From assembly GCA_048013815.1 (NCBI GenBank), contig CM106586.1, forward strand, positions 10,602,001 through 10,666,000: DNA of 64,000 bases, given 5' to 3'. The position numbers were made by a program, and so were the translations under genes. The notes beneath the pieces are model-generated. The model was not told the DNA's origin and searched no databases. It was given only the letters and a program-made list of their open reading frames with translations. The first letter of the stretch is position 1; each line of letters starts with the position of its first letter. Shown here piece after piece: positions 3,631-56,334 of this stretch. This stretch comes from Setoptus koraiensis. Its lineage: Eukaryota > Animalia > Arthropoda.

Positions 3631-4730
3631 ATGAATTCAAAAAATTTCACGCTATACTCCGCACTGATCGTTGGTGCCTGCACCATACTGGTTGCCATAG
3701 TTGCCCAGGGACAGTTCCCAATGGGCTACGACTCGGACTCCAACTCAGGTAAGACTCGGCCCGCTGACAGCGGCTACTGACCTCACTTCCGGTTGAAACG
3801 GCATGCGCCGTTGTTCTGTGTGACCCTTTGGTTGCGATCGGGGCATTAGGCCCCGATCGCAATGTCCATCAATTTTCATGATCGAGCTATCAACTGAACG
3901 TCGCAAATCTAATCTTGTGTGTTGTCTGTCTATTGCTATGAAAACCATTTCTACCCACCGTGAATCAATTGCGTGGCAATCGTGTCTCTCTCTCTGTGTG
4001 TGGCAACAAAGATCACGGATCAGAGCTGTCCAGATCAGAACTAGCCAACATAATGCGCCAATCTCAGAGACCAATGGGTGGCTCTTCGAATCATTACAAC
4101 AACGGCAATCAACAAGTTAACGCAGCAACAAGAAATCTGTACAATCGTCAACAGCCACTTCAGTATGCGCCATCACACAATCAAGGCCAAAATTTCGGAC
4201 CCACAGACGGTATGTCAGGTTACGGGCCCATGATGGGCGCCGGATCGGGTAGATCAAATGCAAACAATGAGGACAGAGACGACGACGACGGTCCTTCTTC
4301 GTTCGGCCCGAGCGGCGGATTCGGTCCATCGAGCTTCGGGCCAAGCGGCGACGACGACGAGGGCAGAGGAGCCGACGGTTCAGCAATGAACCTGAATCAG
4401 GCAGCCACTGGCTACCCTGGCCAAAATATGGGCAACCAAGGATACGGAAATGATCAGTCGAACTTGGCCGCCGGCTTCGGCCCGTACGACAACAGTGGCG
4501 AGGGAGCGGAATACGCTGGCATCAACAACGGATTTGCCAGTCAATCGAGAAGGTCAAAGGCTGCCTCGAGCCCCATGTCATTGAGAAACAATAGAGAGTA
4601 CGACGGAAACGACGACGATGCGCCCGTCTCAAGGTACGGACCAAATTCGGCCAGCAACTCCGACCGTGATCCAGACGATGAATCGCGCAACTCGCCAGAC
4701 GGTGGCCGCGACGACAACGATGACGAATAG
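3631..4730 (+). CDS. Secreted Gly/Asn/Asp-rich low-complexity protein with (F/Y)GP repeats, 2 exons, 278 aa
   Basis: Exon 1 (3631-3748) encodes the signal peptide MNSKNFTLYSALIVGACTILVAIVAQG and ends at donor G|GTAAGA (phase 1). Acceptor AG|AT at 4010-4011 joins in frame to ORF 3960..4730; exon 2 is 4012-4730. Confidence 0.8.
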
Positions 4731-15232: not shown

Positions 15233-18200
15233 CTATAAAACTATCCTAGGTGCTATAGACATGGACATGAGTTCTTGAAACAATAGTTTACAAGCGTATG
15301 GGAGTCTGACCTGGGATATCTGAGTCTTATTCTTGCATCCCTTACACTCAAATGTGTTGTTTCGTAGATTGGCAATACAGATAAGCCCGCACAAATCGCA
15401 CACATGAACCCTGTATGGATCTGACACCTCGAATAATCTCTCTCGCAAGAATTGAGCAGCTCCGTGAGAGATCTGACAATCACGCTCCATCTCTCCGAAA
15501 CGTAGACCTCCGTCGCGAGCTCTACCCTCCATAGGTTGTCGCACCAAGATTTGAACTGGACCTCGCGCTCTCGCGTGGATCTTGTCGTCGACCATGTGCT
15601 TGAGACGTTGATAATAAGTTGGACCCAAAAATATTTGCGCGTTTACTTTACGTCCTGTGTGGGCATTGTACATGACCTCGTAGCCTCTCAATTGATAACC
15701 ATACTCTGCTAACAGATCGGAAATCTTTTGCACATTGACTGTGTCATTGAACGGTGTTGCGTCACCAATTTCACCTTTGTTGGCTGAGACTTTACCTTGA
15801 AGACATTCGATTAAATGACCAATTGTCATACGAGATGGAATGGCATGGGGATTGATGATGATATCGGGTGTTATACCCTCGGATGTGAAAGGCATATCTT
15901 CTTGACGATATGAAATACCGCAAGTTCCTTTTTGTCCATGTCTCGAAGCGAACTTGTCGCCTATCTGGGGCGTTCTCACTGATCTAACTCTTATCTTACA
16001 AAACTTGTTGCCCTCATTGTTGATGGTAAGCATGACTTGATCGATGATACCGCTCTCACTGTTCCTGAGGAAAGTGCTAGCATCTCGTTTGGTGTGACGC
16101 TTAACTGTTCCTTCAAGTTCATCTTCATTCTCTGGTAATAGCACTGTCTTACCAATGATCACATCATCGCCAGAAACACGTGTACCCGGAGCGATGATCC
16201 CGTCGTCGTCAAGTTTGTCATATATGGCATTCTTCATACCTTGACATGTTGTTCGATCAGGCTTCTCGAAAACCTCAACTTGATCACCAACTCTTTTGAT
16301 TTCGCTGTCCTTGTATGATCGATAAAAGACAGATCTGAAAAAACCTCTGTCGATCGCTGATGCATTTAGAATGACGGAGTCTTCTTGGTTGTATCCTGTG
16401 TATGACATGATGGCAACGATTGAATTAATACCTGCTGGCAATTCTCTGAAACGTAGATATTCCATGGCTCTAGTTGTAACCAGTGGTTTTTGTGGGTAGT
16501 ATAGTACATGTGCTAAGGTGTCCATTCGGACGTGGAAGTTGGTAATATAAACGCCCATAGCCTGCTTACCCATAGCAGATTGGTATGTGTTTCTTGGGGA
16601 TTGATTGTGGTCTGGAAAAGGTATAATTGAGGCGCAAACTCCGAGAATCATAGATGGGTGAATTTCGCAGTGAGTGTAGGTTGTACAATACTGTTGCTCT
16701 GATTCGACCAAATCGTCGGGTGTCATAGCAATCATAATAGTTTCTTCTTCTAGGGTATCTATGTATTCTACAACGCCGGATCCGACAAGTTGATGCCAGC
16801 TATAGTCGTTATAGTCTCGATTTTTAAGAGTGTCGATATGAGTCTTCTTGAGTAATAGTTTTTGGTTCTCTACAATGAGTAATGGGCGGCATATTCTACC
16901 GGCATCGGTGTATATTCTGATCTCCCTGTCGCGTATATCACGAACCATCGACACCTCCGAGACTACAATATCCATCTGACGACGAAGTTTCTTAAGTGTA
17001 CTCATGAGAACTTCGGGTTCACGATGTATTCCAACCCAACAACCGTTAACAAATATCTTAGTTGCTTCAGCTATAGCTGACGGGGCGATTTCTTCAATGT
17101 TATCCATGGACCACTCTTCCAAGAACTCTAATATTGGTGACGGTTGGGACCCGACGGATATGTATGCCATGAGGGCAAGATTTTTAACCAAGCCAACAGC
17201 ATGACCCTCTGGTGTTTCAGCAGGGCAAATCATACCCCAAAGAGTGTTGTGCAGTTGACGTGGCCTTGCCAGCTTTCCGTCCCTACCAATAGGTGAGTTG
17301 ACACGACGCAAATGAGACAGTGTGGATGCGTAGGTTAAACGGTTGAGCACTTGAGACACTCCAGCTCTTGCTTGATGAGCTTTTTTCTGGTCTCCCCAAT
17401 TTCCAGTAGCAAGTGAGTAGCGAAGACCATCCGAGATTATTCTTGTTTTGATGGCAAGATCCAAGTTGAAATCTTTGCCACGGTCGATAAACTTCTGAGC
17501 GTACATCCTCACTTCTTTAGTGATATTGCGAAACAGTCCTCTGAATAAATAAGCCAGCAGTGGTCCGGCAAGGTCCAAACGTTTGTTACCGTAATGATCT
17601 CTGTCATCAAGCTCACGACGACCTAAAGCAGCCAGTAGTAATCTATGGACCATATATCCAAGATAGTATGCCTTTTTAGTTTCACAGAATCCACTCAATC
17701 CAACGTGAGGAAGCATCTCTTTTTGTAAAATATCTTTAGCATATCTGATTCTACTTTCTCTAGCGACACCAGGTCCCGCTCCACGCACACCAATGAAATT
17801 TAGTGCAACATCTTGATCCTGGACCACAAAAGCCTCATCCAAAGATGGTTTAACCATTTCCATCATTTCAGGATCTTCAAAATCATAAATAATATGTTCA
17901 AGAATATCTCGATCCGACACGAAACCAAGAGCTCTAAACACTATGATAATGGGAATTTCCTGCTTGATGTACGGTATATTTGCCACAATTCTTTGACCAA
18001 TAGTTGTCTTTTTTGCTCCTTGGCTGCCCCTACTGAGCATACTGCACCACAGAGTACTACTTGGTTTGTTGGAGTTCTCAATGCATGAGCGGCACTCAGC
18101 CTTGTACGCAAACTTCGAGTCTTTCATGGCAAAAACGTATACAGTATTGGAAGCCATCTTTTCCTGGGCGATGAGTACTTTTTCGGAGCCGTTAATGATA

Positions 18201-18766
18201 AAATAGCCACCGGGATCTAGTGGACATTCATTAAGTTGGGCGAGATCACGATCGTTGAGGCCATTGAGTGTACAATAGTCAGATCTCAACATGACAGGTA
18301 TTTTCCCGATAAAAGCCTTGGATAAATTTGTAACTACTTCAGGTTCTCCATCCTTGATAACTTTTTTGGTTATGTCAACGTAAAGGGGTGCAGAATATGT
18401 TAAGTTCCTGAGCCTGGCCTCATTGGGCATCATTTGGGTTGCCGCACCGTCTTTCTCCCAGTGTGTTGGCTTAGAAAGATAAATTTGCTCGAATTTAACA
18501 GTATATTTTGTTGGATTGTCTATTTCACCGCCTTGATGCTGAGCTTCACCTTGTAGCTGAATTTCGGCCGAATCTTCAACAATTCTTTGAACTGACATGG
18601 ATATAAATTCATTGAAGGAGTCTAACTGTTGCCTAACCAGACCTTTTTCATCGAAATACGATGAGATTACAATCCAGCAAGCCTCTTGCCAAAGATCGGG
18701 TGGTATGTCCTCGGCCGAATCACCGTCCATATCGAACTCCTCGTCATATTTACTGTCTGGATTCAT
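15233..18766 (-). CDS. RPB2: RNA polymerase II second-largest subunit, intronless, 1177 aa
   Basis: Full-length conserved motifs [42 protein letters not shown] and a C-terminal Zn ribbon. Confidence 0.99.
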
Positions 18767-19486
18767 TTTTCTGTCGTAATCAGTCGCGTATTGGATCCGG
18801 TTGTCAATTCGACGAGAAACAAACAGGCACTGGCTGAGGATGTCGTCATCAATAGAGTGATTAGAATGCTCCCCGTTGTTCCTTCCCGATCGATCCTTGA
18901 GAGATTTACAATAGATACAATTAATATCCCTATGCTGTAACCGTAATGATTGTTTGTATTAATATGCCGCGACCTGGAAAAAACACTGGACAATGTGAGC
19001 CGGAGAGCACGCATTTGCCTCTAGCACGTTCATAAGCCAGTCGGCCATCCCAACAAATCAAACATCGAAACACGAGAGAGCATGCGCACCCACGAAAAAA
19101 GCGGCAATTATAATAGTGAAATGCCGTGAAGAGATTCTCCTGAAGGGAATTACTCGAGAGTCGCGACAGGTTTCAAGTCGCCATTTATACCGGACAGCTC
19201 CTCCTACGAACATGTCATCGTTAATTATTTGGTCTATGCTGCTGGCCTGTTGATATATTATTTCAATTGGTGTGGCGAAGTGACCAGTGCACTTCATTCC
19301 TGATTAGACCAAATTCAAGTTCCACTCTATATTTGCCAACACATTAGAGCCAACAACCTGCATATCGAATCATTGATGCTCAGTAAGGGATCTACAGATC
19401 TTATCTGGAAGCAAATCAAAAATATAAATGTTGTATTTATACAAAGGATTTTCAAAAATCTCTATTATCCTTTGCTTAGATGAGTG

Positions 19487-21181
19487 ATGGTAAAAAGATT
19501 CTGCACTCTATTTCGTTACTCAAGCAAAACTCTGTTACATTACTCTCAAAGACTTCATCAAAACATAATGGCGGATAGGATATTACCTCTAACATGCGGT
19601 TTGTTAATACTGACACTACCATTACAGCAATTACCAGCGAAAATCCATGGCGTTTTAGAACAAATTAATCGGATGTTTGGAAGAAAACTGCTCTACATTA
19701 AGATCGAGCCTGCACTTGGAATAACGCCTTTCAAGACTCCTAGTAGATTAGATCTTATCAAGTTTATGCCTACTATATACCAAGCTGCCATTAATGTAGA
19801 TTCAAAGATGGACGTCAGAATACTGAATCCCTTAGACAATCAGAAATTTAAATATAAACTACGCTCAGTACCTGATTTAATTATTACTACAAATTGTGAC
19901 TCAGGTGATTCGATTGCTCACTTGAAACAATATATATCAGAAAGATTTCAGGACTTAACAAGAGATGGCCTATTATATGATAATGTTTGTCCTGCTGAAG
20001 AGTCTGCCGAATCTGCAACTCCAACCTATCCCTCTGTTGGCAATGATAATCAGAACAAGACCTACGATAATGTGTGTCTAGGAGGTACATTCGATGGTAT
20101 TCATGTTGGACATAAGATCATGTTCTCTGAAGCCACACTCAGATGTAACAAGAAGATAGTGGTAGGAGTGACGGACACGAATCTGACCAAATCTAAAATT
20201 CTCTGGGAGATAATCAAACCATTAGATGAGAGATTGGAGGAGGTAGAGGAGTACCTCAAGGAGATCGATCCCAGTATCCAGCGAGAGGTTGTTCCAATAA
20301 GTGACATGTATGGTCCGACTCTCACACAGCGTGACCTACAATATCTAGTTGTGTCGGAAGAAACATTAAGAGGAGGTGAAAAAGTCAATACCGAGCGTCA
20401 AAGAAAAGGTTGGCCACCAATGGAAGTTGGCATCGTGCCTCTATTGCATGATAATCAGGATCTTATGACCAAAATAAATGAGAAGAAAGTTTCTTCTTCA
20501 ACAATTCGTCTTAGCAGGCTGGGAACTATAATTAGACCACCCAAACCTAACTTTAGCATACCTAGACGACCCTACCTAATAGGTTTGACAGGGGGCATAG
20601 CGAGCGGTAAAACAGCTATTGGACACTATTTAGAGAGTTTGGGTCTGGGATATATCAATTACGACCTTCTCGGTCACCAAACCTATGAGAAAGTTGACTC
20701 ACCAGTATACAAGGAGATTTTACAGTATTTTGGAAATGGTATTCTCAAAGACGACGGTAGTCAGCAAATTGAACGAAGCAAGCTTGGCAAGATTGTATTC
20801 GGAGATAGAGAGAAATTGGATAAATTAAATTCTATCGTCTGGCCTGCTATATACGAGCTTGTTCAGGAGAACATTGACAGGATGAAAGAAAAACATGATA
20901 TAATTGTTCTAGAAAGTGCCTTATTAATTGAATCAAAGCAAACGGAACGTGTACATCAGGTCTGGGTAACGATTGTGCCACGCGACGAAGCAATAAAACG
21001 ACTGATGAATTCTAGGAATTTAAGTGTTGAAGATGCTGAGCAAAGAGTAAGCTCTCAGATAGACAATATAACTCGTGTAAAACATGCAAATGTCGTATTT
21101 TGCTCAATGTGGGAAAGGGAATTCACGCAGCAACAAGTGAGAAAAGCTTTAGATGAGTTAAAAGTGAACTATCTTAAATAG
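19487..21181 (+). CDS. COASY: Bifunctional CoA synthase (PPAT + dephospho-CoA kinase)
   Basis: VCLGGTFDGIHVGH (HxGH nucleotidyltransferase motif), YLVVSEET, IGLTGGIASGK (P-loop). ATGs at 19487 and 19568. Confidence 0.95.
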   Translation: MVKRFCTLFRYSSKTLLHYSQRLHQNIMADRILPLTCGLLILTLPLQQLPAKIHGVLEQINRMFGRKLLYIKIEPALGITPFKTPSRLDLIKFMPTIYQAAINVDSKMDVRILNPLDNQKFKYKLRSVPDLIITTNCDSGDSIAHLKQYISERFQDLTRDGLLYDNVCPAEESAESATPTYPSVGNDNQNKTYDNVCLGGTFDGIHVGHKIMFSEATLRCNKKIVVGVTDTNLTKSKILWEIIKPLDERLEEVEEYLKEIDPSIQREVVPISDMYGPTLTQRDLQYLVVSEETLRGGEKVNTERQRKGWPPMEVGIVPLLHDNQDLMTKINEKKVSSSTIRLSRLGTIIRPPKPNFSIPRRPYLIGLTGGIASGKTAIGHYLESLGLGYINYDLLGHQTYEKVDSPVYKEILQYFGNGILKDDGSQQIERSKLGKIVFGDREKLDKLNSIVWPAIYELVQENIDRMKEKHDIIVLESALLIESKQTERVHQVWVTIVPRDEAIKRLMNSRNLSVEDAEQRVSSQIDNITRVKHANVVFCSMWEREFTQQQVRKALDELKVNYLK

Positions 21182-49854: not shown

Positions 49855-50309
49855 TCATCTTCTTCTCCTTCTCCAGTAGCCTTTGTCATAATGGCTGCCA
49901 CCGTTGCAATGGATAGGAATGGGTATAGGTATCGGATAGCTGATAGATACAACAACAGTTAAATAAAACAGGGAACAAACAACGGAATAAAACAACGCTT
50001 AATTCGTCTGTGGTTGAATATTTGCGCGAGTATAACTATACTCTATAGTGATTTTAGCCATTATCTGACTTGTTTGCAGGCCCAATAATTACTGATAATC
50101 AGTTTTAAGGCAATGAAATCATTTTGTGCTCACCTGTAGGATCCGCCACCGCCGCCGCCACCCGTGCTGATGATGATGTTTCCGGCCTTGCCCTTGCCTT
50201 TGCCACCGGCCTCAACTTGACCCCTGGAACTGGGGCTCAGCCAAGAGCTCAAGAATAGCACCACTATTAAGGCCATGGCAAGGTTAAGAGGATTTCTCAA
50301 TAGATTCAT
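49855..50309 (-). CDS. Small secreted peptide A (Lys/Gly-rich, YPIPIPIPIHC, poly-Arg tail), 2 exons, 86 aa; absent from the ORF track
   Basis: Exon 1 50309-50134 ending AG|GTGAGC; exon 2 49939-49855 after acceptor ATCAG|. Protein MNLLRNPLNLAMALIVVLFLSSWLSPSSRGQVEA-GGKGKGKAGNIIISTGGGGGGGSYSYPIPIPIPIHCNGGSHYDKGYWRRRRR. Confidence 0.8.
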
Positions 50310-53015
50310 TTTGGATGTGTTTATATGGTTGATGGTATTGAATTTAAATGATGATTAAAATAGATGATAATCACTTGACAAATCGTGTTGTTTGTGTTGA
50401 TTCAGATTAGTCATATATATTTGTGTGTCTACATGAATATTGTTTCTGATTCAATTTGGTCACTATGGTTAATCTATGATGATATACAAACTCAACTGCA
50501 AAATTTACTTCACTTAAACTAAACGTTTGTTCTTGATGAACAATCTTTTTATACCTGCGTCAATAGAGACTAACTCGATGACTCGATCATTGCAGGCTGT
50601 TATGTAACGAGAGAAATACTCTCCAGAAGCTCTTCTTTGTCACTTGGTGAATAATTTCAAATATCTTCTAATCGTCTTATCCAGTGAACGGGTGTGGCCA
50701 ATATCTATATATACACATTCCAGACAGGTAGATATGGTGACTATCGTTGATCGCTAGTAGCAGCCAAAGTTAATTTGGGGTGTCAATAACCTGTCTTGTC
50801 CTGTATTCATTAGTCGTCCGCTTGTCTTTCGGGGCCTAATCAATCGCTGTGTGTGCAACAATTATAGATATAACAGTATCATCGAGTTAGTATCAGTGGT
50901 TGTAGTGGTAGTAATAGATTATTGTCACTGCAGTGTTGTGAGAAAGTGTAAGAATTGTTGCTAATTTAATTGTTGCAAGCAGGCAGATAATTATTAGCAA
51001 AATATGCAAACTAACAGCAGCAGCAAAGTAGTGATTATTGACATGGGCATAATAGCCGCCTAATGATTGTTGTAGCAATCTGGTCTTTTGCAACATCTAG
51101 TTATATAACGCATCGATAGACATACATGGCTCTCTTGAATGGCTTGGTTTTGAGCATACATTCTAGTTATATTTTAGTTATACAACAAAATACGACAAAG
51201 CAGCTAAAAGATGTTTATAGATGGAAAGTGATGAAACCATTTCGCAGTTAGCAGGTTGTTGAGCTGAAACAATAATGTAGCAATAACAAAGACACCAACA
51301 CAGCCGAAGACGATAAAAAGAACAATTATCATCACAGAGCTTGACAGCTTAGCGACAGGTTGCTTGCGTTGCTGTTGGTATGGTTAGCTGAATTCTAAAA
51401 ATGAAATGAACTTATTTTCTACCACTACTAATAGTCAGCTAGAACTTACCTGTTCATCTCTCACAAGTATAAATGTGAGGGTGTATTCTTGATGGAAATT
51501 TGTTGCAATCTTCTGTTTTTAAAAGCTAGTTAAATTTTACAGTTATGCAATCCACTAGCGATACAATAAATATAGATTGTTTGCCATTCGATTTTTTCTA
51601 TCGTTACTGGCTGCTGATGAATAGTTTGGTCGGCGATGACACTAGAAAATCCAATATAAGATACAGATAATATGAAAAGTCGTCTCTCAATTGTTGATGG
51701 TCGATATAGACGGCTCGTATACTATTTGTTCGGGCCAATATTTGCTATTGTAGTTGCAGGATTGATGCCGTGCTTTCGAAATGCCACTTTGAAGAATAAA
51801 CCGTTGACGTTGCTCAATTTTGTCTAACTGTCACTCTCAAATATCTCTTGTTTGTGTGTCTCATGTCGCAATGATACCATTTGAATTACCATTTGAATGA
51901 TTCTCTATTTTGTTTTCTAACAATTGTTCGGAGATTTCATTAGTAATGAATCGTTGTAAACTTGCATCTTATCCATCTAATGAAGGCTTGTCTGTGTGAG
52001 AGGTCATTGAGTCGGTTCCTGACTGCCTCTTTTTTTTTTCTTTAATGCTCGTAGATCTTGAACAACGGCCGTTGCATTAGTGTCTGGTCGGATCAAGCAA
52101 CGAATAGACAGAGAACAGACGTAACGACATTTCGAACGATTCAGTTAAAGAACAGAACTGTCAAGCCTGAGAAATGCAAACACATTTCAGCAGCCGAGCC
52201 GGACAGTTGGACAGAATGAAGCGATACCCAATCGTCTAGCTACTGATTGATTGATTTTGTATGTGACTCATAAGTTATGACTCATGGATTTGCAATTGAT
52301 AAATATTTGGTATTTTAGCATAGACGATGAAAAGGCGGTGCAAAGGTGAGGCGATCGATAGGCATCATTATATGACATAACGTCATTGGCGATCTCTCTT
52401 GTTTGATACTAGCATGCATAGTGAATCGTGAAGCAAATGCGACGCGCCGGAGAGAAAGTTCATTAGGGCCAATTTCGTATGGGCAGCTTCGACAGTTGAC
52501 ACAATTGAATTGTTTGTTGCCTGATTGGCTAGTCCGGCGAACAAGATGGGGCAACAAAACAACCTGTTGTTGTACTACTACAGCTTGCAATGGTGCTAAT
52601 TAGTCGCTTGACAACCTGTCGCTCACTGATAGCGCCAATTGTCTCTAAGGTGATTAACGATTCGCTGATTGTTGCGACACCGTGAACAATATTGATGGTT
52701 GCTGCCACATTGCACTCGTTTGCTTCGAAACATTTCACCATGTTCATGTTCTATTTCTCATTTTAATTAGTTAGCTTCTTTTTCTTCTTTTGCTTGTTTG
52801 TTTGCCTCGAACAAACAAGTGGCAAGAACGAGACCCCTCCATTGCACATCGGCTAACAAGATAACGCCTTCTTGGCGCTTCGAAACGAATATGCCAACAC
52901 ACACAGGCAGCCAGGGTGCTGCCGAGCGTCGAAAAGTGGCAGACGTTTGCAGCAGCCATAGATGAGCATCGATCGAGAATCGCTCACCTGGACGAATATC
53001 ACCTCTCAGGGGCTC

Positions 53016-53024
53016 TATATAAAG
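53016..53024 (+). promoter_or_regulatory. TATA box of peptide B gene
   Basis: TATATAAAG ~180 bp upstream of the ATG at 53199, with Inr-like TAGTC/TCAGTT at 53044-53060. Confidence 0.5.
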
Positions 53025-53198
53025 AGAATGATTGTTTTATAACTAGTCAAACATTCAGTTCTTGTATTTGTGGCATCCAGTAGCTGGGATGAGTAGACAA
53101 TCAATAGAATAACTAGTAACAGCAGTCGCCCAAGCAGCAAACAATCAGATCAATTCTCCAAGAGAAAAGAGGCCCTTGAGAAACAAAAAATTGTCAAC

Positions 53199-53781
53199 AT
53201 GAAGATCTTCAAAATGCTATCATCGTTAGCAGCAGCCGTATTTGGTGTTGTTGCAATCATCGATCCTGTCAGTGCTGGCGGAGACAAATCTGCCAAGACC
53301 ACGGTAAGTACCAACGAGATTGCACGCACGCATGTAGATAGATGAGCGTAATCAGACAGATTTTCAGAGTAGCGCGATTTTCTAGAAATTTTCCAGAAAT
53401 TTTCCAGAAATTTTCTCGAAATGACTTTTTCGAGTGATTTCTTTTCTTCGGAGCGATTTTTTTTTCTGCGAGCGGCCATAAAAACGAACCGAGACAAGAA
53501 TAACCAACCTGACGATCTCAATCTGTTCCCAAACACTCTATTAGGTCATCACGCTAGCGGGCGGAGGAGGACATGAAAAAGCTTCGTATCCCGTAAGTAT
53601 AACCGCCTACTGATAAAACAATCGATTTCTTGTGCAGCCGAAATAAACCGAAATGAACCGAAATATATTAACATGTTCTCATGCCCACTCCTAGATTCCC
53701 ATTCCCATTCCGGTTTGTCAGCATGGCCATTACGGGGGACACGGAGGACATGGAGGCGGCTTCGGACAGGGCGGCTGGTAA
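53199..53781 (+). CDS. Small secreted peptide B (YPIPIPIPVC, Gly/His-rich tail), 3 exons, 79 aa; absent from the ORF track
   Basis: Exons 53199-53303, 53545-53592 and 53695-53781, with GTAAGT donors and TAG acceptors, all phase 0. Protein MKIFKMLSSLAAAVFGVVAIIDPVSA-GGDKSAKTTVITLAGGGGHEKASYPIPIPIPVCQHGHYGGHGGHGGGFGQGGW. Confidence 0.82.
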
Positions 53782-54321
53782 TCAGTGAGCGAGAAGAATC
53801 AATAATTAGCACCTGTTGGCAATCAAGAAACGGTGGCTAGCCAATACCCATAATCTTCCTTTCATTTACCTCGTTGCCGTAACCATAATTACAGAAATCA
53901 TCATATCAAACTCCATCGGCCCCTGATCGAAGCCCCCAGCTCAGCTAGGCCCTGCTCGACTAAGCTCAGCGCTGGCCCTGTCCCGCAGTAAGTCTAATTT
54001 GGCAAATTGGTCTGGACAAGGGACGCGCAATTAGTCAACCATTGAATAGTTTTGAGCACATCTCCACATCCATACAACAATCCCACATACACAACATTCT
54101 TTCGACCAGGCCCCCTTTATCCCACCCTGCTCCTGTCAATCAATTGATCATCAAGTTTCGCTTGAATCAGGACGGTTTGATACTGTGTCTGAAACTAGCC
54201 GGAACTAGTGTTCGTATCTATATAGTCTGTCTACAGATATTGAACGCCCGGCGCAACCCAGATCTAGACATCCAAAATCATCATTACAGCCATAAATTAG
54301 GTTGAGTCGCTCCCCACTCAA

Positions 54322-54603
54322 TCAGACAAACAACATTGAAACTATTTCAGGCAGACAACTTTTTTTTGTATCCATCACCAACATATCGATCATGCAAGTA
54401 TCGAGCATATATACCAAGTATAAAGTATCAATTATCGGGAACATTCGGGCCATCATGGAACAGGAGCTGTCGACGATGCAAGCAACAATTTGATTTGTTT
54501 TCGCCTGAGCTTTTTGAGGGATTTTAAGCAGCAATAGCTCCAAGAATAATAATAGAACAAGTTGAATGGATAGTATCAAGTGTTGCGGCGGATATTGTAG
54601 CAT
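54322..54603 (-). CDS. Possible small secreted Cys/Met-rich protein
   Basis: MLQYPPQHLILSIQLVLLLFLELLLLKIPQKAQA-KTNQIVACIVDSSC...TC...KSCLPEIVSMLFV has a hydrophobic leader ending in AQA and 4 Cys. Short ORFs overlap it on the other strand, so it may be spurious. Confidence 0.3.
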   Translation of the reverse strand: MLQYPPQHLILSIQLVLLLFLELLLLKIPQKAQAKTNQIVACIVDSSCSMMARMFPIIDTLYLVYMLDTCMIDMLVMDTKKSCLPEIVSMLFV

Positions 54604-55547
54604 TAGTTGATATTCATTAGAGTTCATTCATGCCAAGTAGTAAAAGTAGTAGTATCAGTAGTAGTAGTATTAGTAGTAGTTGTAGTAGTAATAGTAGCAG
54701 TGGTGGTAGTAGCGCTGCTGTAGTAGTTTGTACAGTATATTTGATAAGACCAAAATATTCTGAAAGAATTTGGGCCTATGCAAATATATTTTATCCAATA
54801 CGTACGTAATGTATTTGTGCGATTGTGTGCATTCGTATGTGTGTGTGAGTGTAAGGTTTTTTTATCCTGTATGTATCTTTTTATAAGTAGTAGTAGTATC
54901 AAAAAGTAGTAACATAATAAATGAACAAACAAACTAAAAAAAAACTGATAAATTCACTTCCGAATTTCTGGTTGTCTTTTCTCCGTTCAGTCGGTAGTCC
55001 TATCCAACGACAGATGTTCAATGCATTTTGAAACTGACAACTTGTGCCGCTACAATTCATCAGACTGGACAATTTTTTCCTTGTTGGCTTCTCAAAGTTT
55101 TCACGTTCTTTCATGCAGAATCTATCCAGACTGCTCGGTTTTCTGGCTCCGACATCGACCCACTTTTAATTATGTGTCCATTGATGATCGATGGATGAAT
55201 TACGCAACAACAGACCGGTCTTGCTGGCCGCACTTTTCTTCGTTCGAATCAGACTGCTACTTTGTATGTTTCTCGAGAAACAACAAAGATAATGATTGTG
55301 ATCGTTGCTGATTGCATTACAATCAAACAACTGATTGATTTGTCTTCTCGCCGCTCGTCCGCATTCGACATCAATCAATCCACTGGAGGCCAGTCGTCAT
55401 CACTAGATGTTGCACAATAGTCGCCAGGCCAATTGAACATACTCATTCGTCGACAGTCTACCGACGATAACATCTCTATACATCAGATAATAGAAGCAAT
55501 ATTCGTGGTAGCAACAAGTAAGCAGCAAACAATCAGCAAACATCAAA

Positions 55548-55955
55548 ATGAGCAAAAAGTATCAACATAACGCATGCATCTGGACCTTAGTGGTCATGCT
55601 GATTTGGTTCATTTTGGCGGAAATCGTCAAAGAATACGAACACATCATTCCCATCAGATACAAGACACAACTTGTTGCAAACAACTTTGAAAACGGTGCC
55701 GCATCGGAGTTAATGATGAATGAAGCCAGAAATGTGGATCATTTGCAAAATCCAAAAGATGACAACTCTAGATTGTATTCGTTTGTGCTGTTTGCCGAGG
55801 CTGGCAAGAAGAAAAAGAAGGAAAAGAGCGAAGTTATAGTTATATCTGTGACCAATCCACAACCAAAAGGTGGCCACATGTATCCAATTTACGTGCCCAC
55901 TTGCGGAGGTCATGGAAGAAAGCGTCGCAGAAGATCTGTTTTTTGGAAAGTGTAA
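55548..55955 (+). CDS. Secreted peptide C, intronless third member of the YP(IP)n-Cys family, 135 aa
   Basis: Hydrophobic leader, then ...LFAEA-GKKKKKEKSEVIVISVTNPQPKGGHMYPIYVPTCGGHGRKRRRRSVFWKV. Confidence 0.75.
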   Translation: MSKKYQHNACIWTLVVMLIWFILAEIVKEYEHIIPIRYKTQLVANNFENGAASELMMNEARNVDHLQNPKDDNSRLYSFVLFAEAGKKKKKEKSEVIVISVTNPQPKGGHMYPIYVPTCGGHGRKRRRRSVFWKV

Positions 55956-56334
55956 AATTCATTTCGCACGGGTTCAATCGATTTCGAAATTTGATCCGCC
56001 AATGAAAAGTTCGCCACTTGCAAGAAATACCGAGCTAAGCAATAAAGCGGAAAAAGGAGGCGCATAATAGAACATTTAAACACAACTGTAATTACAACAA
56101 ACACGCTGCTTTATTATTGGATACAATGACACATTAGATGTTTGGTAAGATAGATTGTAACTTTTTGAATATTTGAACACTCACAACTGAGACATCCCAT
56201 CATATTACACAAATTATATACGATGAATATATGTATCGTCACGAATGGTCGTGGAGACATTCAGTCTCGATCCCGATCCCTGTCAATTCAAATGATTCTG
56301 TTTGAATCAGTTCCCGCGTCCAGGAATCGCCCGA

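Follow-up and report, generated by a model that had tools for sequence, protein, structure and literature searches.

In the precursors of peptide hormones, the mature peptide is frozen in sequence while the signal peptide and pro-regions drift, and a glycine followed by a polybasic cluster classically marks a site of convertase cleavage, carboxypeptidase trimming and amidation. C-terminal processing at Gly-basic ends, as predicted for the genes described here, is also known from the glycine-rich peptides of arachnid haemocytes and from many arthropod antimicrobial peptides. The CCHamide neuropeptides carry two cysteines in an intramolecular disulfide and end in ..GGH-amide. Eriophyoid mites, which are major crop pests and virus vectors, are among the smallest animals and have the most streamlined arthropod genomes. 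The present analysis concerns three clustered genes, A, B and C, of Setoptus koraiensis, located at positions 49,855 to 55,955 of a window of 64,000 nucleotides, the whole stretch of DNA that was analysed (contig CM106586.1, positions 10,602,001 to 10,666,000). These genes very probably encode a real family of secreted, processed peptides, and the reading favoured for them, at a probability of about 0.4, is that of endogenous extracellular ligands which, as with hormones or neuropeptides, conserved partners would recognise.

Regarding the gene models, exons were joined at canonical GT..AG sites. The first-pass annotation of this DNA had placed three genes here, with one intron in A, two in B and none in C, and both the positions and the intron counts were borne out by reading and joining the sequence. 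All three reading frames are intact, and the parts are as follows:

50134..50309, minus strand: gene A exon 1, encoding the predicted signal peptide (34 amino acids, VEA end), a (GK)n stretch, the NIIIST strand and a Gly run; its last codon is split as AG/C
49940..50133, minus strand: gene A intron, 194 nucleotides, GTGAGC..TATCAG, phase 2
49855..49939, minus strand: gene A exon 2, encoding the YPIPIPIPIHC core, a short Gly/Tyr tail, Trp and five Arg, then the stop codon
53199..53303, plus strand: gene B exon 1, encoding the predicted signal peptide (26 amino acids, VSA end), then GGDKSAKTT
53545..53592, plus strand: gene B exon 2, encoding VITLAGGGG..SYP, the hydrophobic strand and Gly linker
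53695..53781, plus strand: gene B exon 3, encoding the IPIPIPVC core and a Gly/His-rich tail with a terminal Trp, then the stop codon
55548..55955, plus strand: gene C, a single open reading frame (ORF) of 135 amino acids with signal/anchor, pro-region, module, RKRRRR and a tail of 6 amino acids, then the stop codon

The product of A has 86 amino acids and that of B 79, the two introns of the latter being both in phase 0, 241 and 102 nucleotides long, with GTAAGT..AG ends.

The three products follow a common plan, composed of Ala-Gly, a Lys-rich stretch, a beta-prone hydrophobic strand ending in Ile-Ser (NIIIS in A, VITL in B and VIVIS in C), a Gly-rich linker, a Tyr-Pro-x-x-x-Pro core with the sole Cys of the mature part (YPIPIPIPIHC in A, YPIPIPIPVC in B and YPIYVPTC in C), a Gly/His/aromatic tail and a basic cluster. 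When all six frames of the 64 kb were scanned for the Tyr-Pro-(hydrophobic-Pro)n-Cys core, it turned up at these loci only. Moreover, a profile hidden Markov model (HMM) built only from A orthologues of other species, and applied to the window in six frames (2,698 segments in all), matched A exon 2 (E = 1e-12), A exon 1 (2e-7), B exon 2 (9e-4) and C (2e-3), with the next segment at E = 1.8. When the A-family and C-family profiles were aligned to each other by hhalign, they matched with 94% probability (E = 1.3e-7), with 45% identity over 49 colinear columns. A, B and C are true paralogues, and the modular layout that had first been noticed by eye is upheld by the scan, the model and the profile alignment alike. 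As the sequences are rich in Gly, Lys and Pro, it could be argued that they resemble each other by chance through low complexity, or are not genes at all. This reading is effectively refuted and keeps a negligible probability, considering the E value between the A and C families, the restriction of the HMM matches to the three loci within the window, the conserved intron positions, and the orthologues in dozens of taxa whose changes are synonymous only.

The homologue-bearing contigs come from read-archive assemblies and metagenomes. A stands head-to-head with B, and C just downstream on the B strand, in L001-L003, L007, L008, L009, L010 and L013, and the three-gene cluster with the same orientations is present in at least six other taxa. 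Because all three paralogues are already clustered in distant taxa, the comparison supports an old cluster whose members all predate the divergence of these taxa, in line with the old divergence that the first-pass annotation had suggested as one option, beside a retrocopy. In the divergent taxon L004, A occurs alone, with no B or C core motif within the 18.9 kb examined; other small ORFs lying close by in L001 and L004 bear no relation to the family.

The gene structures were compared across the same taxa. Gene B was rebuilt in five others (L007, L001, L008, L009 and L013), where both introns sit at identical positions, after ..KTT and ..YP, with GT..AG ends, while their lengths range from 71 to 241 nucleotides and their sequences are unrelated; the conserved positions thus lend strong comparative support to the splice model. 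Meanwhile, the A intron is present only in the window and in its close relative L007 (about 975-1140), A being one uninterrupted ORF in all other taxa seen, and exon 2 is required to match these intronless orthologues. The claim that two members were hidden by splicing is therefore sustained for both genes. The A intron lies 7 nucleotides from the position of the second B intron and in a different phase, so it is not simply the same intron; it would have been either gained, a rare event, or retained in this lineage alone, the clade being known for its massive loss of introns. No further copies of the A or B introns were found within the 64-kb window, nor any sign of a repeat-borne origin. Within the first B intron, short tandem repeats, with units like GAAATTTTCCA and GATTTTTTxTTCGAAA, occur in the window (at 53360-53470) and in L007 (at about 4300-4450), and in these two the intron is two to three times longer than in other taxa.

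The window and L007 are colinear, with about 66-70% identity in non-coding DNA, and the exons of gene A are 84% (exon 1) and 92% (exon 2) identical in nucleotides. Between the two, the mature part of A (both exons) has 18 synonymous and no nonsynonymous changes (synonymous rate, dS, 0.84; nonsynonymous rate, dN, 0), and that of B (all three exons) has 19 and none (dS 0.75, dN 0). The signal peptides, meanwhile, show 12 synonymous and 5 nonsynonymous changes in A (dS 0.87, dN 0.07) and 7.5 and 11.5 in B (dS 0.55, dN 0.23). The same was seen for mature A between L008 and L009, with eight synonymous differences and no nonsynonymous one. Among A orthologues the signal peptides differ widely, whereas the mature part of about 50 residues is almost invariant (see P0009:39-89), with mean pairwise identities of 40% in the signal and 90% in the mature peptide; the C family reaches 12% in its N-terminal part against 72% in the module. 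What is constrained is the protein sequence, and within it the mature part, which is under strong purifying selection.

The only strongly hydrophobic segment of each precursor is N-terminal, within residues of about 6-28. All three had been described as having a signal peptide ending in (V/A)-(E/S)-A, which holds for A and B, with small residues at -3/-1 of the predicted cleavage site (VEA-G and VSA-G). It does not hold for C, whose strongly hydrophobic segment comprises residues 8-28 only and whose AEA lies 85 residues from the start, past a variable region; on this ground C is better described as a prepro-peptide. Its layout consists of an N-terminal signal/anchor, a variable pro-region of ~55-60 amino acids, the module LFAEAG-K5-EKSEVIVISV..YPIYVPTCGGHG, a furin-type RKRRRR and a tail of six amino acids. 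Likewise, the Arg cluster once taken as the end of both A and C is terminal in A, but is followed by those six residues in C. The invariant LFAEAG-K5 junction of C looks like a relic of an A-type signal end and may now serve as a processing site. C orthologues also share a loose Q-x-I-Y-S-N-L-K motif after the N-terminal hydrophobic segment (window 55548-55640), followed by an unalignable spacer, which suggests that the end of the signal/anchor is itself under some constraint.

The conservation of C stops at its C-terminal basic site. Among the C orthologues, Gly directly precedes the polybasic cluster in 56 of 58, an aromatic-Gly-basic arrangement is present in 53/58 and R-x-[KR]-R (furin, RRKR-type) in 44/58, and the sequence past the cluster is variable or absent. 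B orthologues end in GW-RR, FG-RR (L013 only) or GGW-stop, the window B having no basic cluster, and A orthologues end in Trp and five Arg. Consequently, besides the C family, a Gly amidation donor is found in that one B orthologue (L013), and is absent in A and in most B orthologues. These Gly-polybasic ends point to processing of the prohormone type, which was not among the roles suggested in the first-pass annotation.

For the favoured reading, we infer that the small prepropeptides would enter the secretory pathway and lose the signal peptide and, in C, the variable pro-region as well. A module of about 40-50 residues would then be freed at its C-terminal polybasic site by a furin/prohormone-convertase-type protease, the basic residues would be trimmed off its end, and in C, as in some of the B orthologues, amidation of the C-terminus at the exposed Gly would follow. 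The predicted products (~4-5.7 kDa, pI 8.2-10.9) would be cationic, Gly-rich and probably unstructured, bearing the beta-prone strand, the hydrophobic-Pro core and one Cys flanked by His, which could join two chains in a dimer or bind metal. The role as endogenous ligands is favoured because the mature peptide is frozen while the signal and pro-regions drift, and because conservation ends at the Gly-polybasic site.

Several points weigh against such ligands. In the AlphaFold models (full-length A, and the alignment of the mature A and C modules), only the signal helix is confident, and the mature part reaches a predicted local distance difference test score (pLDDT) of about 50-62. Since no fold is found there, an extended or disordered state is probable for the peptides as long as they are unbound, and a disordered chain of ~47 residues that includes a Gly run and (GK)4 would be unusual for a hormone. 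A beta-hairpin that had been considered for the mature part is unsupported by these models. In addition, A lacks the Gly donor for amidation and keeps its five terminal Arg, although trimming would leave the same product if a stop codon stood straight after the Trp. Their retention suggests a function for the basic tail in itself, for instance in binding anionic surfaces, which would better fit a defence, matrix or effector role. The invariance of low-complexity linkers is hard to explain for a simple ligand, and we know of no receptor for these peptides. Finally, the A proteins of the most divergent pair (L001/L013) are ~78% identical, as judged by eye, not much above the 62% of a neighbouring RF-1-domain protein.

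The charge of the predicted products brings in host defence, that is, antimicrobial or antifungal peptides, cationic and rich in Gly/His and Pro, which would be trimmed and amidated and act on microbial membranes or intracellular targets. A has a net charge of +8 and C of +12 (from AEA to the end), with pI 10.5-10.9, and the B tail is rich in Gly, His and aromatic residues; the disordered mature part, the clustering of paralogues, the candidate TATA promoters of A and B, typical of strongly regulated genes, and the Gly-basic ends would all suit such peptides. Meanwhile, the window B carries only about +1, no kappaB-like site was found by a simple scan of the 300 nucleotides upstream of A, B or C in any taxon checked, and no homology to known antimicrobial peptide families was detectable in Pfam, in PDB or in a profile search of 1.84 billion proteins. 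As near invariance of the mature peptide across many taxa is also unusual for immune effectors, a defence role is considered unlikely.

The basic clusters (R5 in A, K5 and RRKR in C) could also be signals for cell entry, nuclear targeting or binding to pectin or membranes, in which case the peptides would be core salivary effectors delivered into plant epidermal cells. Their predicted secretion agrees with this role, as do the kept R5 tail of A with its suggested function, the restriction of the family, as far as detectable, to a plant-feeding mite clade, and the presence of homologues in an agave/cactus plant-associated metagenome set. Fast evolution is normal for effectors, though, and here dN is 0 at a dS of about 0.8, with ~90% identity in the mature part; furthermore, B has no basic cluster in Setoptus koraiensis, and the conservation of C ends at its basic site, as would be expected if that site were cut off rather than used. 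This role is accordingly rated as improbable. A frozen mature part with a drifting signal is the opposite of what is usual in arms-race effectors and antimicrobial peptides, which makes both of these roles, put forward together with a matrix role in the first-pass annotation, less likely than it implied without removing them. Mimicry of plant peptides (CLE/IDA-like, with ..P.P.H. ends) was also considered and rejected, as the key positions do not line up.

Regarding the residues of the mature module, all A, B and C orthologues have one Cys, and a His always lies at most three residues from it (IHC, VCxH, CGGH). The cross-linkable residue types are all conserved (Lys, His, Tyr, Cys and Trp), and the strongly beta-prone NIIIST and EVVVISV are flanked by charged or Gly 'gatekeeper' residues. 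Those features can be related to structural, cross-linking or adhesive matrix peptides (of cuticle, stylets, egg coat, spermatophore or attachment glue), in which the strand and the hydrophobic-Pro core would assemble and Lys, His, Tyr and the lone Cys would cross-link covalently or via metal. A disordered monomer would be compatible with this, and an invariance that extends over the full length, linkers included, would fit a tightly packed assembly. However, a Gly-polybasic convertase/amidation motif at which conservation stops exactly is a mark of bioactive peptides rather than of matrix proteins, the predicted products are very small, and the representatives matched none of the chitin-binding or cuticle domains of Pfam (R&R chitin_bind_4, Tweedle, CPF and others). 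A matrix function thus seems improbable.

The relatives of these peptides were sought in several collections. The A query retrieved 32 clusters of relatives in the protein collection (P0002-P0032 among the orthologues) and the C query 36. A profile of the A and C modules, searched against 1.84 billion representative proteins, gave 51 family members (E <= 1.4e-9), all single-module proteins of 78-226 amino acids and only of the A and C types, and after them only three repeat or low-complexity proteins (P0093-P0095), which were rejected as members for being multi-repeat or low-complexity. One of these, P0093 (273 amino acids, from a metagenome), has a MHPIFIPWCAG stretch four times, mimicking the C-type core MYPIFIPSCGG; it probably reflects a DNA repeat in translation and was taken as a spurious match. 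The B query, with X at both exon junctions, had no match in the ORF-based protein collection, and B is absent from 5.8 billion predicted proteins, because it is always split by introns.

None of the family members with listed sources has an NCBI or UniRef source or a name, and neither C nor the porin of the window had an entry when looked up by exact sequence. Pfam gave no family at E<=10 for five representatives and only a chance-level LETM1 match for one, the PDB profile search gave no match, and literature string searches for six core motifs were empty; the secretome described in the Aculops genome paper has nothing recognisable as this family. The statement that no named family has this architecture is sustained, and the profile search suggested for detecting an already described cuticular or glycine-rich family yielded no such match. 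The A/B/C family is unnamed and previously undescribed, and is clade-restricted as far as HMMER can see, appearing to be confined to gall and rust (eriophyoid-type) mites. Two Joint Genome Institute (JGI) sets with homologues belong to an agave/cactus plant-associated study of soil, rhizosphere and phyllosphere (PMC6978686), which fits plant-dwelling mites.

Besides the coding parts, the following candidate signals were noted in the window:

50547..50553, minus strand: candidate TATA box of A (TATAAAA), 244 nucleotides upstream of the ATG, a consensus match only
53016..53023, plus strand: candidate TATA box of B (TATATAAA), 183 nucleotides upstream of the ATG, a consensus match only
56041..56046, plus strand: candidate poly(A) signal AATAAA, ~90 nucleotides past the C stop, from sequence only

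The candidate TATA box of A is in a block conserved with L007, and A orthologues carry one 180-260 nucleotides upstream; B orthologues have a candidate 134-237 nucleotides upstream of the ATG. In most taxa, TATA boxes are thus found 130-260 nucleotides upstream of A and B, and C is without one. GATA matches in these promoters are only scattered, and the simple scan for them and for kappaB-like sites was not informative. From the stop of B to the start of C there are only about 170-280 nucleotides in most taxa (L001 8269-8460; L008 5595-5878; L013 about 564-735), and ~1.8 kb in the lineage of the window (53781-55548). Considering the short gap and the lack of a TATA box in C, B and C may share regulation or even a transcript.

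Downstream of A in L001 (10634-12228) and L013 (2988-4434), there is an unnamed gene of 230-247 amino acids, followed by the RF-1-domain gene, 62% identical between the two. The window has BTG there instead, so that only the peptide cluster itself is syntenic with it. The remainder of the window is that of a compact, intron-poor animal genome, which also holds cyclin B, VDAC and MetAP genes, and its extreme intron poverty is illustrated by three uninterrupted frames:

15233-18766, minus strand: RPB2, a single uninterrupted ORF of 1,177 amino acids
41690-43585, minus strand: eIF5B-like GTPase, a single uninterrupted ORF
19484-21181, plus strand: bifunctional CoA synthase, a single uninterrupted ORF

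This poverty fits the massive intron loss published for eriophyoid mites (PMC7738191; bioRxiv 10.64898/2026.08.24.746826), which have also undergone large-scale gene loss (PMC7738191).

An unannotated trio that came through such gene and intron loss as a cluster, and whose sequence has stayed frozen in dozens of taxa, very likely has an important role. In a broader and rather improbable version, the trio would be an extracellular peptide system specific to the clade, which arose in the ancestor of gall and rust mites and comprises either new hormone-like ligands with their own receptors or a core set of universally conserved secreted peptides, able to bind or enter plant cells through their poly-Lys/Arg ends and Ile-Pro core. 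If the version that binds or enters plant cells were true, the trio would give a first conserved molecular handle on the manipulation of plants by these mites. In either case, it offers concrete candidate peptides of ~5 kDa that can be synthesised, and a sharp clade marker for spotting gall and rust mites in plant metagenomes, and the example of B indicates that ORF-based protein catalogues miss genes split by short introns.

Among known kinds of peptides, the Gly/His-rich and Gly-rich antimicrobial peptides (shepherins, holotricin-3, tenecin-3, and the spider acanthoscurrin and ctenidins) are alike in combining a signal peptide with a small, cationic, disordered, Gly-rich peptide and basic or amidated C-terminal processing, and the B tail, of the GHGGHGG..GGW type, resembles the Gly/His-rich antifungal peptides in composition only. 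However, they are not known to have the conserved hydrophobic strand, the single Cys or a core of the Y-P-(hydrophobic-Pro)n-Cys type, the A/B/C peptides are far more conserved, and no homology was detected. Pro-rich cationic peptides (indolicidin, apidaecin and drosocin) are similar in style, with an alternating Pro/hydrophobic core, likely extended, and basic flanks; here, though, the core is (Ile-Pro)n without interspersed Arg or a PRP motif, within a longer modular peptide, again with no homology detected. The basic-tail salivary proteins of ticks are secreted acarine proteins as well, with a C-terminal polybasic tail thought to bind anionic surfaces, but they are larger, multi-Cys and Lys-tailed proteins of blood-feeding ticks, unrelated in sequence to the one-Cys peptides described here.

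Closer in appearance is CCHamide-2, as the C peptide of the window would end in ..TCGGH-amide after the predicted cut. The mature region of C has only one Cys, which makes the disulfide loop impossible; in addition, most C orthologues extend to ..GGY-Gly-RRKR (predicted Tyr/Phe-amide), and the C peptide lies far from the signal peptide. Membership among the CCHamides was thus rejected for want of the second Cys, the likeness being superficial. Compared with arthropod neuropeptide and prohormone precursors in general, A, B and C differ in a peptide that is 40-50 amino acids long, Gly-rich, apparently disordered and with a single Cys, which has no sequence relation to named peptides, and A differs further in lacking the amidation Gly and in keeping five terminal Arg. 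Nevertheless, they share with these precursors the signal peptide, a conserved peptide that is the only conserved part, a variable spacer and tail, a polybasic C-terminal site and, in C, the Gly before it.

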